From Paragordius varius (Eukaryota; Animalia; Nematomorpha): DNA of 64,000 nucleotides. A model generated the notes under the pieces. That model did no database searches, had not been told where the DNA came from, and saw only the letters and a list, made by a program, of their open reading frames with translations. The position numbers and the translations under genes were made by a program. Below, in pieces: positions 22,801 through 31,800 of the stretch. The stretch covers positions 186,001 through 250,000 of the forward strand of contig OZ176059.1 in NCBI GenBank assembly GCA_964247055.1. Reading direction: 5' to 3'. Each line of letters opens with the position of its first letter. The stretch's first letter is position 1.

Positions 22801-25800
22801 AACCATCCCATACTTTACCATATATATTATATTGGCTAATATGGGAAACGTTATGGATTAAAAACCTGTTTTGGTTTTATTAATTTTCTTAGGTTCTTTG
22901 CTAAAATTGCACATATATGCATCATGTATTTTTTTTAATTTATATATGGTGCAGTAAAAATTGAAGTTATACTATGAACAAAACGTAAAATTATAAAGAC
23001 TAATATTTTTATCTAAAATGCAACCATACTTTTTAAATCTTGCCTTTTTTCGATAAAACTCATTGTTTTAAGTTCCAAAGTGTAGGTAGAGTAGAAATGT
23101 ATATTGGTAACACAATTAATTACATATATTTACGATTATAATTAAATAGTTATAAGGGAAAAATTAAGATTTAAAAAAGTATGGGGTTGTCTTTAGAAAA
23201 AATATTTGTCTTTATTTATATTTTTACGTTATGTCCACGGTAAGTATAATTTCAATTTTTCCACTGTGAAAATGTACACTCCCTTTTTCTTAGCTGATTT
23301 ACTAAAAATTGGTGGTGACAAAGTTATGTTACCACTCCTGAGTGACTTGGACAAGACTAAACTCGACAAGGTTAAGGAATTGAGTGAGAAATCTGAAATT
23401 AAACTTAAACCTATCATCCCACAAGCAGTTGGACAACACAACAATATAAATGCCGCCAGTAGAACAAAGAACCAAGAATTTGAACCAACATCATCAGCCA
23501 TATTACAAAAAGGTTTTGATATCGATATTAATAATGAGAATGGTGGTGGTGGTGTTTTAGATTCAAATTCAACGAATATGGGAAAACCAAAGTAAAGTTT
23601 TTGTTTTATATATATGATCCTATATATATATATATACGCTATTTTGAGTTAAGTTAAGTCTTACTTTATATTCTAGTTTGTTGGTGTAAAATTGATGGGT
23701 TTTACAGTAAAAAATTGAAGTTATACAATAAAATATAAAGACAATTTTTTTTTCAATAGACAATCATACTTTTTTAAACCCTAATTTATCCTAAAAACAT
23801 TTATAATTATAATGGTAAAATACATAATTGATTAGTTAAATTGAAAAAATCAATATTAAAAAGGTATGGTTTTTTGTTAGATAAAAATATTTATATTTAT
23901 ATTTTCACATTTTGTCCGTATAATTACAATTGTTACTGTATTTTGTACGTTAAAATCATCATAAAGGGTAGGACTACAGATTCGGAGTGAGTTTTTGTAA
24001 CACAAAGTAATTCCTATTTATAATATTACTTCTGAGACGATTTATTACGTAGCAGTAGTACACATGCCTTCCCCTTGTGTACAAGAACTAATGAACGATT
24101 TTACAGATTATTAAAAACTGGCCATCATTGCCTTTGTTGTGTTAACATAGGGAAGGTAGGTTACAATAAGACTTTGTTGACCTTTTAACGTTTACGTATA
24201 AGTTATTATCACAGTTATCGAGAATTTACTTAGTCCGATAATATGATTTCAAAATAAATTCATCTAACTTTCATAATATTCTAGAAAAATGATACGAAAA
24301 ACAACGTTTAAAGCCGCCCATTCTGGCTTACAGGTAGTATACTATTATAAATTTTGCCCCCTAAATATATTTTTTATCAGCTAAAATTAAATAATTAATC
24401 ACACGAATTATCATTCAATTCAACAATTCTCGAATTATACCATCGTTTGATTTAAGGCCAAGCCACTTTACACATTATTGAGTTATTTAAAACGTCTGTA
24501 TTTTGATTATGTTAAATTTTTGTTAATTCATGTTACTATAACCTATATGTGATGTAAAGCAATTTTATAATATGTATGGATATACGACAGGGGTGGCCAC
24601 ACTTTTTTTGTCGCGAGCTTTTTTTTGGCTTTTTTGTTATAAAAAGAGTTCGCGGTCACCCAGAAATATTTATCAAAAAAACTGAATCAACACTTTAAAT
24701 GATGTATATACCTGCTTTACAGATTAGAGTGACTTGTTTAAACCATTTTAAAATTGTAATTTTTTTATCTATCAACCAAATACAAAAATAATTTTAATTA
24801 AAAGACAACGGGTTATTAACTACCTTAATTTTTTAAACATAAAACACTTCAAAATATTTATTTATTAATTTCTATTATATGAAATTTTACAATATAAAAA
24901 TTTAAAGAATGCATTTGAAATTACAGGGGAGAATACATTATGATACAAAAAATAAAAGAAATAAAAAATAGCATTCCAATTTAGAACCATAATTTGAACA
25001 TAAATAAGAGTACATTAAAATTGTATCAGTTTTAATTCTATCCACATATTTTTTAGTAAATCGGCTTTTTCCTAAGCGAAAATACAACTCGATAAACATC
25101 CATATTTAATAAAGAAAAAAATATGCCCGACTGCGAAAAAATTCAGAAAGTTTATCTAAATTAGGTTCAAATGAAGTCAAAGCAATTCTCAAACATGATT
25201 CTAAATGTTTATTAGTTAATTGTGACCTCTGTTTAGTTTTGATAGCATTCATAATTGAAAAAGCCGATTCACATAAATATGTGGATCCAAAAAAAGAATT
25301 GAATAATGCAGCGGTTTTCCAAATATGGGGGTATTTATCTTTATTTATAAATTTATATATATCTGATCCTAATGATTTTAGATGGATATCGCATTTTACA
25401 TTTATTAATTCCTCTTCCAACTCTGCTAAATTTGGTACACCAAGAAAGTGGCTGAGTTTTTGAGCAATATATTCAACATTATTATTATTATTAAATGGGC
25501 ATGATAAAAAAATAGCGATGTCTTCAAGTTTATTTATAGATGAAAATCGTTTTTCAAAATCATTAATAAGCAGACCAATATCATCTGCATATTTTTCAAA
25601 AGAGAGATTCTCTATTTTTTCAGACACCGCTGCCAGATTAAAAAAATGTTTTAAATCTCGGTTTTTTAATTGTGTTTCTACTACTGTTAGTGTTTCCTTA
25701 AAAGATTTTAAAGCACCCATCATATCCATTATTGTTTTATCTTTTCCTTGTAATTGGATGTTTAATTTGTGCAATTTCCGTGATATCGCATAAAAATGCA

Positions 25801-28800: not shown

Positions 28801-31800
28801 AATATTTTTAGCAGGGGGCATTTCACCACCCTCGACTCAAACAGGAACAGCTGTTGACAATAATGTCAATGAGCCATCATCCGTTCTTCTCTCAAATAAC
28901 GCGACAATCAATCTGGCCAACAATTTGTTCAACGCAAATGCTACACGCCAAGCTAAAATGGGCCGTCTCAAAGCATGGGTAAGTAACTTTTTAAAGGCTA
29001 CAACTCGAAAAATCATATTATTACCCTAAATTTAGATTAGTTTGATATTAACATAACATAAAATTTTGGGGGAAATAGATAAATTGTAGGACCCTTTTTT
29101 AGAAAGGAATATGATTATATTAAACTCTTAGAATTGATTGCATCATTTAAATATGTATAGTAGTTTTTTTCTAAAACACAATAAAATTGAAATTATATGG
29201 ACAAAGCCAAAAAATATAAGACAAATATTTTTTTGAATGACAACCATACTTTTTATATCTTCTTTTTTGAAATTATAACTCATTGTTTTAAACTGCGATA
29301 AAATAGAGATGTAATTTGGTAACACATTCAATTATGTATTTATCGATTGTAATTAAATGATTTTTATAGGATATATTAATCTTTGAAAAAGTATGTTTGT
29401 CTTTTGAAAAAAAATTGTCTTTATATTTTTACTTGTACATTAATTGCTAATGAGACAATAATGACATAAGTCAAATAAGTTTTTTTCCATTACCCAAACA
29501 TTTTTTTTATTTATAACAAATTACCTTAAATAAAATATTTTTTATAAGGACAAAAATTTTAAAACCTTGATTTTTTAATGTAACATAAATTATTTTAGAT
29601 TGCAAAAATAAATACTAGAGATATAAATTGATTCTTTATTCATCTATACATTTCAAAACTGTAATTATCAAGTGAATTATAAAAAATTAGAGTTTAAAGT
29701 TTTTTGTATTGTCTTTTAGTTTTTACGTTTTGTCTTTATATAATTTAAATTTTTTTTACTGTTAATAACAGTAGAGAGTTGTTCCTCCTTATAGATTTAC
29801 TCCTCTCTATATTAATATATCTATTATTTCATTATATTAGTTGTTAATGTATATATGTAGAAACCAATCGCTTCATCATGGTTGAATGGGATAGTGAATA
29901 GCGGTTCGATCGGTGGTATCGGTAGCTCAGGTGGTGGCGGACCGATGAGCGGTGGCGGTTCTGCGGGTGGTGGCGGTTGTGGACCGGGTAGCGGGCCTGG
30001 AGGCGGTTCAGGGGCTAACGCTAGTGCCCGAGCCCTGGGTGAAGCTGCCACCTCGCTCAGGGATGTGATGGAACCGTTGTTGGGAAATAGTGTCGTCAAA
30101 TCTTGCCTGTTTCACAAAGATTTTAGGTTCTTTTATCATCATATCAAATTTATATAAAATGAATATAAACGTCTATTCTATTTTTTTAATTCTTTTTTAA
30201 GTATCATCATATGTTAAATATACCATTTTGCAATTTAAATTCACCCTTGAACATTTCGAACTAATAATATATAATATGTTTTCGTGCTAATATAACTCAT
30301 TATTAATATAAAATATCTTTTAATGGCATAGTTTATTATTTTTTCAGTATTATTTTAATTTTAAACAAAATTTATTTTTTAAAATAAATCAAGTAATTTT
30401 ATATTTTAAAACACACTTAATTTATTTTAGGGTGAATTCGAACTGTAAATGGCATATTTTACTCTTTCATATATATATATAAATATCAAATCTTTCCGGT
30501 AGTTAAATTAATAACTAATAGACAAATTTTTAATATTAGAGAAATTGAAAAGTTGCCTAGTATACAGTAAAATGTGTAAAGGTAAAAACCATATATTTTA
30601 AAATATAAAAACGCGTCAAAAAATCTTCTTCTTGATAGTTAAATACAAGATTGATGTGCTAAGTTGTTGCTTATCCCCCATATTTGATTATATTTTTAAT
30701 ATAGGCGCTATAAAAAATATTTATGTTGAGTTTTACTTATTTTAGCTATCTTTCTAATTTAACTCAAATGAATTCCTGTCAAAAACTTAATTAATCGAAC
30801 CTTTATCCAAAAAAGACACAAATTTTAAAAAATAAAAAAATGGGTTTTTTATTCACTAAATACCATTTGCATTCCAATAGTGTCCTTTAACACATCAAAG
30901 TGGTCTTAAAAATTTTTAAGTTTGAATTTAACCATAATTATCACATGTATTTTTTTATTTTTAACCTAATGTTCTTTATTTATTTATTATATATTTATTC
31001 ATTTAAAATTAATATTTTGCATTTAAAAAAAACAATTTTTTTGTTTCAAACTAATTTTCCTCAATTTAACAAATTTTTTAAATAATTGTTTTTAATGAAA
31101 AATTCTAATCTATACCTCAGAAAACTTATTTTTTTTAATTACATGCTAAAATTTTATAAATATACAAATTAAAATTTAGGAAATTAATCAAGATATACGG
31201 TTTCTCTGTGTTTAAATATGATATTTTAAAGTTAATGTTAAATAAAGAAAATATGTTAAAAATAATGAATGATTTACGATTTGATTGATAAAAGTTAAAA
31301 ACAAAGTAAAAGGACCAACTTGAAATGTTCAAGGACTAACTTAAAGTGTTCAAGAACACTCTTGAAGTGCAAATGGTATACGCTATAATAATACATTTTA
31401 TTTCTTCCTTCCCCCCCCCCCTTCTTAGATATCAAATTAAAGGGATGGATACCCTTAATCAATGTCTAACCGAAATTTTGAATGCCATCCACCGCCCCAT
31501 ACCCAATAATGAAGAAAACAATGGTTATAGCGGTCAATCCATCATTGATTTTGAGACGGGTGTTAACTGTTTTGAGAGGATTTTTGTGGGTTCAGACCTC
31601 CTTATCCGTTGGTGTATTATCAGGCTTTGTGATAGCTCTAACCCGGCCTTAATGCTTAAATGCTTGGATTTTTTAACGCACCTCTTTGAAATTTTACATG
31701 TCTTACAACAACAACAGAGACAACTAAACAATGGTAAAGTTGTTTTGATAAAAATAATGTTTTATATTATATATATATATATATATATATATATATATAT

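Follow-up and report, generated by a model that had tools for sequence, protein, structure and literature searches.

Microtubule polymerases of the XMAP215/ch-TOG/Msps (CKAP5) family canonically carry five TOG domains, with TOG3 and TOG4 lying between TOG2 and TOG5, together with a C-terminal domain (CTD) and a tail; outside the yeasts, the notable exception to this rule is the three-TOG ZYG-9 of Caenorhabditis elegans, whose array is akin to TOG2-TOG2-TOG5 (PMC5461023). S2 cells recover their polymerisation rates with an engineered Msps reduced to TOG1-2-5 (Byrnes and Slep 2017; PMC5461023), whilst TOG3-4 are still required for spindle length in flies (PMC5461023). The XMAP215/ch-TOG (CKAP5) gene considered here is that of the horsehair worm Paragordius varius, carried on the + strand of a 64-kb window, by which we mean the whole stretch of DNA analysed (64,000 nucleotides; assembly GCA_964247055.1, contig OZ176059.1, positions 186,001 to 250,000). 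The gene runs from an ATG at 13891 to ∼46.8 kb and encodes a predicted protein of roughly 2000 aa in which TOG1 and TOG2 are followed by ∼190 aa of basic, low-complexity linker, a single TOG5-class domain, the CTD and the tail. Relative to the canonical five-TOG proteins, TOG1, TOG2, TOG5, CTD and tail are homologous and the tubulin-contact aromatics are retained, whereas the TOG3 and TOG4 of the canonical form are both missing. It is highly probable that the P. varius protein truly lacks TOG3 and TOG4, forming a natural TOG1-TOG2-TOG5-CTD array, and that the pair was lost before the split from Gordionus, a second nematomorph.

Pfam searches of single exons returned only weak TOG/HEAT matches on the TOG1 and TOG2 exons and none on those of TOG5 or the CTD; because Pfam is nearly blind at this scale, hidden Markov models (HMMs) were built for each domain class. 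Twenty-six five-TOG family members were aligned and the alignment split into seven blocks (TOG1, TOG2, TOG3, TOG4, TOG5 with its N-terminal HEAT repeat HR0, CTD and tail), and the HMM of each block was run, heuristic filters off, on every open frame of 12 aa or more from either strand (3563 in all). Matches are confined to TOG1 (13975-17872), TOG2 (19255-23409), TOG5 (30041-35239), the CTD (43011-44547) and, weakly, the tail. Even at E-values up to 1, the TOG3 and TOG4 HMMs have no match of their own among the frames of the 64-kb window, and score only as weaker cross-matches on the TOG1 and TOG2 exons. No TOG domain was detected by the class HMMs 3′ of TOG5 in the window, so TOG3 and TOG4 have not merely been displaced. 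Between the TOG2 and TOG5 motifs, the only coding-like + strand frames are 23294-23553/23591, 27826-28081, 28812-28978 and 29861-30126, and the class HMMs found no HEAT- or TOG-like open reading frame in the linker introns. Neither the window nor the Gordionus locus has an open frame matching the TOG3 and TOG4 that stand between TOG2 and TOG5 in the canonical array. The class HMMs, matches in the PDB and a per-TOG tree all agree with the original prediction, made from this DNA alone, of a TOG1-TOG2-TOG5 array lacking TOG3 and TOG4.

With its exons joined, the third domain scores 84.5 bits (E 3e-27) against the TOG5 HMM and has no TOG1-4 match at E≤0.01, and exon 31433-31699 matches only Msps TOG5 (5vjc), ZYG-9 TOG3 (2of3) and Xenopus XMAP215 TOG5 (9c13) in the PDB. 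In the per-TOG tree (IQ-TREE; 104 TOG domains, 27 species), each of the five TOG classes forms one clade with support of 97-100, and the third domain of the window falls inside the TOG5 clade (100/100) as sister to the Gordionus TOG5 (99/85); a per-TOG phylogeny had been proposed with the original prediction, and the grouping with TOG3 that would have contradicted it did not occur. TOG5 motifs span the whole domain in the alignment (HR0 Trp, FHKDFR, SDLLIRW, GDVVFKHL and LENKIRK), and both the HR0 Trp (RLKAW, in exon 28812..28978) and the Phe of HEAT repeat A (HR A; LFHKDFR) align with those of ten TOG5 domains. The extra N-terminal repeat HR0 that characterises TOG5-class domains is thus present, interrupted by a Gly-rich stretch.

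The two N-terminal domains each match their own class. TOG1, exons joined, scores 260.5 bits against the TOG1 HMM and 33 against that of TOG2, and TOG2 scores 260.1 bits against its own HMM and matches Msps TOG2 in the PDB (2qk2, E 8e-8). The family's TOG1-TOG2 pair with its HR A Trp is preserved (THKAWKVRL in TOG1, ADKSWQVRK in TOG2; tree clades 100/99), and the expectation that the tubulin-contact aromatics had been kept proved correct for KAWK in TOG1, KSWQ in TOG2 and KDFR in TOG5. The linker of ∼190 aa has a pI of 9.6 and a net charge of +6, being basic like the inter-TOG linkers of other members. The C-terminal domain and tail motif of the family are likewise found, the CTD on four exons and the tail as a weak match (E 0.48); the C-terminal exon had no matches in the PDB. 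These analyses of the spliced model used our own HMMs, MAFFT and IQ-TREE.

The closest relative identified is that of another horsehair worm. In a phmmer search of 1.84 billion representatives, the best match of the TOG1 exon (13972-14244) was a 1555-aa CKAP5-like protein of Gordionus sp. m RMFG-2023 (107 bits; P0001/P0152), and one and the same 1561-aa sequence of the Gordionus (G. montsenyensis) CKAP5-like protein is deposited under XP_065312770.1 (RefSeq) and CAK9290227.1 (submitter), the submitters' annotation having used RNA sequencing (Gordionus genome paper). By HMM, this protein reads TOG1 (1-237), TOG2 (277-513), TOG5 (638-924), CTD and tail; tblastn aligns it in unbroken order to the window across TOG1, TOG2, TOG5 and CTD, no extra domain lying between them, and the same six-frame HMM scan of its 43.5-kb locus returned no TOG3 or TOG4 frames. 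The two proteins share the N-terminus MSEDID.SKLSLE, the TOG1 intron positions and the domain order, but differ in length (1561 aa in Gordionus), the window protein being longer because of Asn/Ser/Gly-rich inserts; the window gene has more introns in TOG2 and TOG5, and the linkers cannot be aligned. Identity is 61% in TOG1, 58% in TOG2 and only 36% in TOG5, the first two values indicating that the source species is a fairly distant nematomorph. The Gordionus genome has 26.9% GC and 64% repeats, mostly DNA transposons (Gordionus genome paper), and the base composition and DNA-transposon load of the window fit these published figures. Since two independent assemblies of two distant nematomorphs agree on the architecture, an assembly collapse, the alternative raised at the outset, is very unlikely.

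ZYG-9 and its rhabditid orthologues resemble the window protein in having three TOG domains, of which the last is TOG5-class with HR0, followed by a CTD. They differ in the first domain, which in the window is a genuine TOG1 (260 bits against 33 for TOG2) and in rhabditids is TOG2-class, as in Anisakis (236 bits for TOG2 vs 29 for TOG1), giving TOG2-TOG2-TOG5; the orthologues examined were those of Parascaris, Brugia, Caenorhabditis, Pristionchus, Meloidogyne, Strongyloides and Steinernema. Nematode linkers are also shorter than that of the window, and acidic in Caenorhabditis remanei and Parascaris. Plectus sambesii (P0439), a nematode outside Rhabditida, resembles the window in that its first domain is a genuine TOG1 (275 bits); the TOG2 and TOG5 domains that come after it group in the per-TOG tree with those of other nematodes. 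Among the rhabditid orthologues compared with Plectus (P0387, P0389, P0414, P0421, P0431, P0436 and P0401), the first and second TOG domains are 44-53% identical in most species, rising to ∼95% in Meloidogyne hapla and Steinernema hermaphroditum, where the near-identity could stem from conversion in recent times, from re-duplication or from an artefact of annotation.

Nematodes and nematomorphs are generally regarded as sister phyla. Because both nematomorphs and Plectus have exactly TOG1-TOG2-TOG5-CTD, a single loss of TOG3-4 in the ancestor of Nematoida (horsehair worms and nematodes) is the most parsimonious history, and we regard it as plausible, if unproven, leaning slightly towards the probable. 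The fuller scenario, in which TOG1-TOG2-TOG5 was ancestral to Nematoida and kept in Plectus and the horsehair worms, with the ZYG-9 array arising later through replacement of TOG1 by a TOG2 copy in rhabditids and still converting in some species, may as readily prove wrong as right. The original prediction had left a choice between an independent deletion and a state shared with nematodes; Plectus lends support to the shared state, short of proof. Two considerations keep a shared loss from being established, namely that 1-2-5 arrays have arisen independently elsewhere and that the nematode sample is wholly chromadorean, the query length window being one that would exclude enoplean proteins of five-TOG length.

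Convergent reduction to the minimal array, with horsehair worms losing TOG3-4 independently of nematodes, is accordingly a serious contender, albeit one we hold to be somewhat less than evenly probable. By public gene models, TOG1-2-5 arrays occur in the acariform mite Brevipalpus, a mite-like environmental sequence, the springtail Folsomia, the holozoan Pigoraptor and the mucoromycete Bifiguratus, and perhaps also in the salmon louse; again by public gene models, a flea and a mirid bug have four-TOG arrays without a TOG3-class domain, as does a mirid-like sequence (P0102) assembled from a public run. The reduced-array sequences used were P0083, P0142, P0290, P0076, P0088, P0035, P0014, P0066 and P0102. 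In the tree, a five-TOG scorpion stands next to the acariform mites (Brevipalpus P0083, P0142; 100/98), and Folsomia falls among five-TOG insects (99/95); the presence of 1-2-5 arrays in mites, springtail, Pigoraptor and a mucoromycete fungus indicates that loss of TOG3-4 recurs. Further in favour of independence, the nematode-specific linker start (..MVQSxHK) is missing from both nematomorphs, no lineage-specific motif is common to nematomorph and nematode linkers, and the TOG5 tree does not unite the two groups. Their usual placement as sister phyla, the identical arrays of the nematomorphs and Plectus, for which one loss suffices, and the explanation of the rhabditid TOG2-TOG2-TOG5 as a later change pull the other way. 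A different reduced array is seen in the CKAP5/XMAP215 of the sponge Halisarca dujardinii (P0226), which is TOG1-TOG2-TOG2-TOG5, lacks TOG3 and TOG4 and has TOG2 copies 91% identical.

A specialised or decaying paralogue, with a canonical five-TOG CKAP5 encoded elsewhere in the genome, would account for the rapid evolution of the TOG5-class domain and CTD and for a protein swollen by low-complexity inserts. TOG1 and TOG2 (260 bits each) are nevertheless no less conserved than in any orthologue, every exon is open and the introns in TOG1 sit where those of Gordionus do; moreover, with the Gordionus protein as query, the best 120 matches include no other Gordionus protein, and five-TOG proteins from other animals score 727-805 bits there. 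On the evidence of this locus and of the Gordionus search, we consider such a paralogue very improbable.

The exon model on which these comparisons draw lies in DNA of ∼25% GC that contains no N and many introns and repeats. The first coding exon (13891..13906, +; 16 nt) supplies the ATG and MSEDI and is followed by a 69-nt intron (13907-13975), the 13906-13976 join giving an N-terminus almost identical to that of Gordionus (MSEDIDASKLSLEERC); the gene model calls for no micro-intron of 21-30 nt. TOG1 occupies four + strand exons (13976-14242, 15577-15757, 16690-16802 and 17757-18019; TOG1 HMM E-values per exon from 1e-28 to 2e-6), with the TOG1-TOG2 linker at the end of this 13976..18019 block, and TOG2 occupies five (19249-19368, 20363-20501, 21628-21795, 22190-22393 and 23294-23553 or -23591; TOG2 HMM, E 4e-18 to 3e-8). 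The last of these opens at a good acceptor (tttttcttag/CTG, exon from 23294) and, as had been stated, the TOG2 domain ends at ∼23400. A repeat-filled linker intron of 4.2 kb (23554..27825, +) without a coding-like + strand frame or TOG signal is followed by an Asn/Ser/Lys-rich, basic linker exon (27826..28081, +) with a good acceptor, ctgtctgtttag, and a donor (AAAG/GTTAGT) in phase with 28812; this exon has no protein-family matches. Exon 28812..28978 (+) encodes the linker end and the first HR0 helix, ending RLKAW before a perfect donor (TGG/GTAAGT); its ..SVLLSNNA.. near the linker end resembles the PLLxxN motif that precedes TOG5 in other species. Exon 29861..30126 (+) encodes the Gly-rich stretch and, after it, the second helix of HR0 and HR A, with LFHKDFR at its end (tblastn to Gordionus residues 656-687, 61% identity). 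The distance of ∼280 aa originally given from TOG2 to TOG5-type sequence holds for the interval to LFHKDFR, with ∼190 aa separating SEK from RLKAW.

The rest of the TOG5-class domain lies on five + strand exons (31429-31733, 32412-32632, 34015-34129, 35121-35246 and 35536-35768), with single-exon TOG5 HMM E-values of 2e-10, 9e-4 and 0.05. A low-complexity region and then the CTD exons follow at 37380..44631 (+), where exon ends are approximate; the CTD HMM matches four exons at 43011-44547 (E 1e-5 to 6e-3), and the approximate exons of this region (38750-38965, 39707-40130, 41284-41424, 42978-43202, 43418-43498, 43654-43740 and 44419-44631, all +) are collinear in tblastn with Gordionus residues 1020-1374. 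The C-terminal tail exon (45580..45990, +) bears the weak tail HMM match (45703-45774, E 0.48) and is collinear with the Gordionus tail, and a candidate last exon lies near 46615-46797 (+). Upstream, on the - strand at 5928-9268, a neighbouring gene includes an exon of 522 aa that encodes a membrane anchor and the motif NPCRDFYAFAC, which is typical of M13/neprilysin-type peptidases.

Several features of the locus weigh against the absence of TOG3 and TOG4 as read here. The search for the two domains covered only the 64-kb window and the Gordionus locus. At 84 bits (vs 190-370 elsewhere), the TOG5-class domain has diverged to an unusual degree; it is the most divergent TOG5 of the tree set (branch length 0.95) and carries inserts, and a GC-rich, Gly-rich stretch of ∼50 aa (∼29900-30040) separates its HR0 Trp from HR A. 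Use of an alternative donor and acceptor (28982/30012) would drop this stretch and bring the Trp-to-Phe spacing back to the 35 residues of Msps, although the acceptor at 30012 lacks a pyrimidine tract; the stretch is also conspicuous as a GC-rich segment within a 25% GC genome. At the end of TOG2, the best-looking donor (AAA/GTAAAG, exon end 23591) does not keep phase with the acceptor at 27826, and the only in-phase donor (GGT/GTTTTA, exon end 23553) is weak. The three possible RNA runs under the same species label contribute no reads over 23250-29100. Finally, short-read contigs are interrupted inside the repeat-filled linker intron, so that continuity over 24.4-27.4 kb comes from the assembly alone.

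This intron is dense in mobile elements. A degenerate hAT transposon copy (25106..26930, -) encodes a zinc finger (zf-C2H2_12, E 7e-11) and then a transposase body in two overlapping frames (Dimer_Tnp_hAT, E 9e-5), with ∼100-fold depth in DNA run X1. A repeat of 100-150 nt resembling a miniature inverted-repeat transposable element (MITE), represented by the unit at 23780-24040, occurs 17 times in the window, for the most part within introns of the CKAP5 gene; a search for terminal inverted repeats around the 23.7-24.0 kb repeat found nothing convincing. The depth of run X1 is ∼210 in unique parts and reaches 2e4 to 5e5 at 23642-24033 and 24426-27365. The original account of the four linker introns was sound as to the hAT element, the MITE-like repeats and the lack of a HEAT-like open reading frame, but not as to the remaining DNA being under 900 nt in each, the fourth intron (30127-31428) measuring 1.3 kb; its phase-consistent exon chain similarly holds only through the weak donor GGT/GTTTTA and not for the best donor at 23591. 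Donors equally weak (GTTCTT, GTTTTT) serve well-supported junctions of the same gene, and the join of 23553/23591 to 27826 may involve alternative splicing or a small exon that escaped notice.

High-copy repeats that short-read contigs do not bridge, an out-of-phase best donor at 23591 and a gene model lacking RNA support are what might be expected if TOG3 and TOG4 exons existed and had been missed, whether through assembly collapse in the 4.2-kb intron or as overlooked divergent exons. That account must be reconciled with the lack, in every frame, of a TOG3 or TOG4 match other than the weaker cross-matches on TOG1 and TOG2 exons, with a window free of N whose unique flanks are identical to DNA contigs (zero differences), and with an independent Gordionus assembly and annotations that share the architecture and have no TOG3 or TOG4 frames; we judge it extremely improbable. 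A pseudogene is ruled out, since every exon is open and TOG1 and TOG2 are fully conserved.

By analogy with characterised relatives, the horsehair-worm protein is inferred to be a microtubule polymerase. TOG1 and TOG2, which keep their HR A tryptophans, would pick up free tubulin dimers; the ∼190-aa basic linker may hold the protein on the microtubule lattice; and the TOG5-class domain, with HR0 Trp and HR A Phe kept, would bind lattice-incorporated tubulin and probably also the ring complex of gamma-tubulin (gamma-TuRC), TOG5 being implicated in an XMAP215/gamma-TuRC nucleation module by a 2026 study (PMC13376574). The CTD and tail would give targeting, the CTD acting via TACC in other species. 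In domain content (TOG1-TOG2-TOG5-CTD), the protein equals the engineered Msps without TOG3-4; the latter was made artificially, by deletion from a five-TOG protein, whereas the former is natural and known here from its sequence. A minimal design already known appears here in natural form; the protein is not of a new kind and reveals no new mechanism.

Nature has arrived at the engineered minimal array on more than one occasion: both horsehair worms and Plectus have it, as do, going by annotation, mites, a springtail, Pigoraptor and a mucoromycete. This recurrence favours the idea that core polymerase function can do without TOG3-4. These proteins offer natural material with which the contribution of TOG3-4, such as to the control of spindle length, can be tested, and the loss of the pair is a candidate molecular character for the relationship of nematodes and nematomorphs. 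Were the Nematoida ancestry true, the family would provide a stepwise natural history of array minimisation, and the horsehair-worm and Plectus proteins would stand as natural tests of the minimal-polymerase model.

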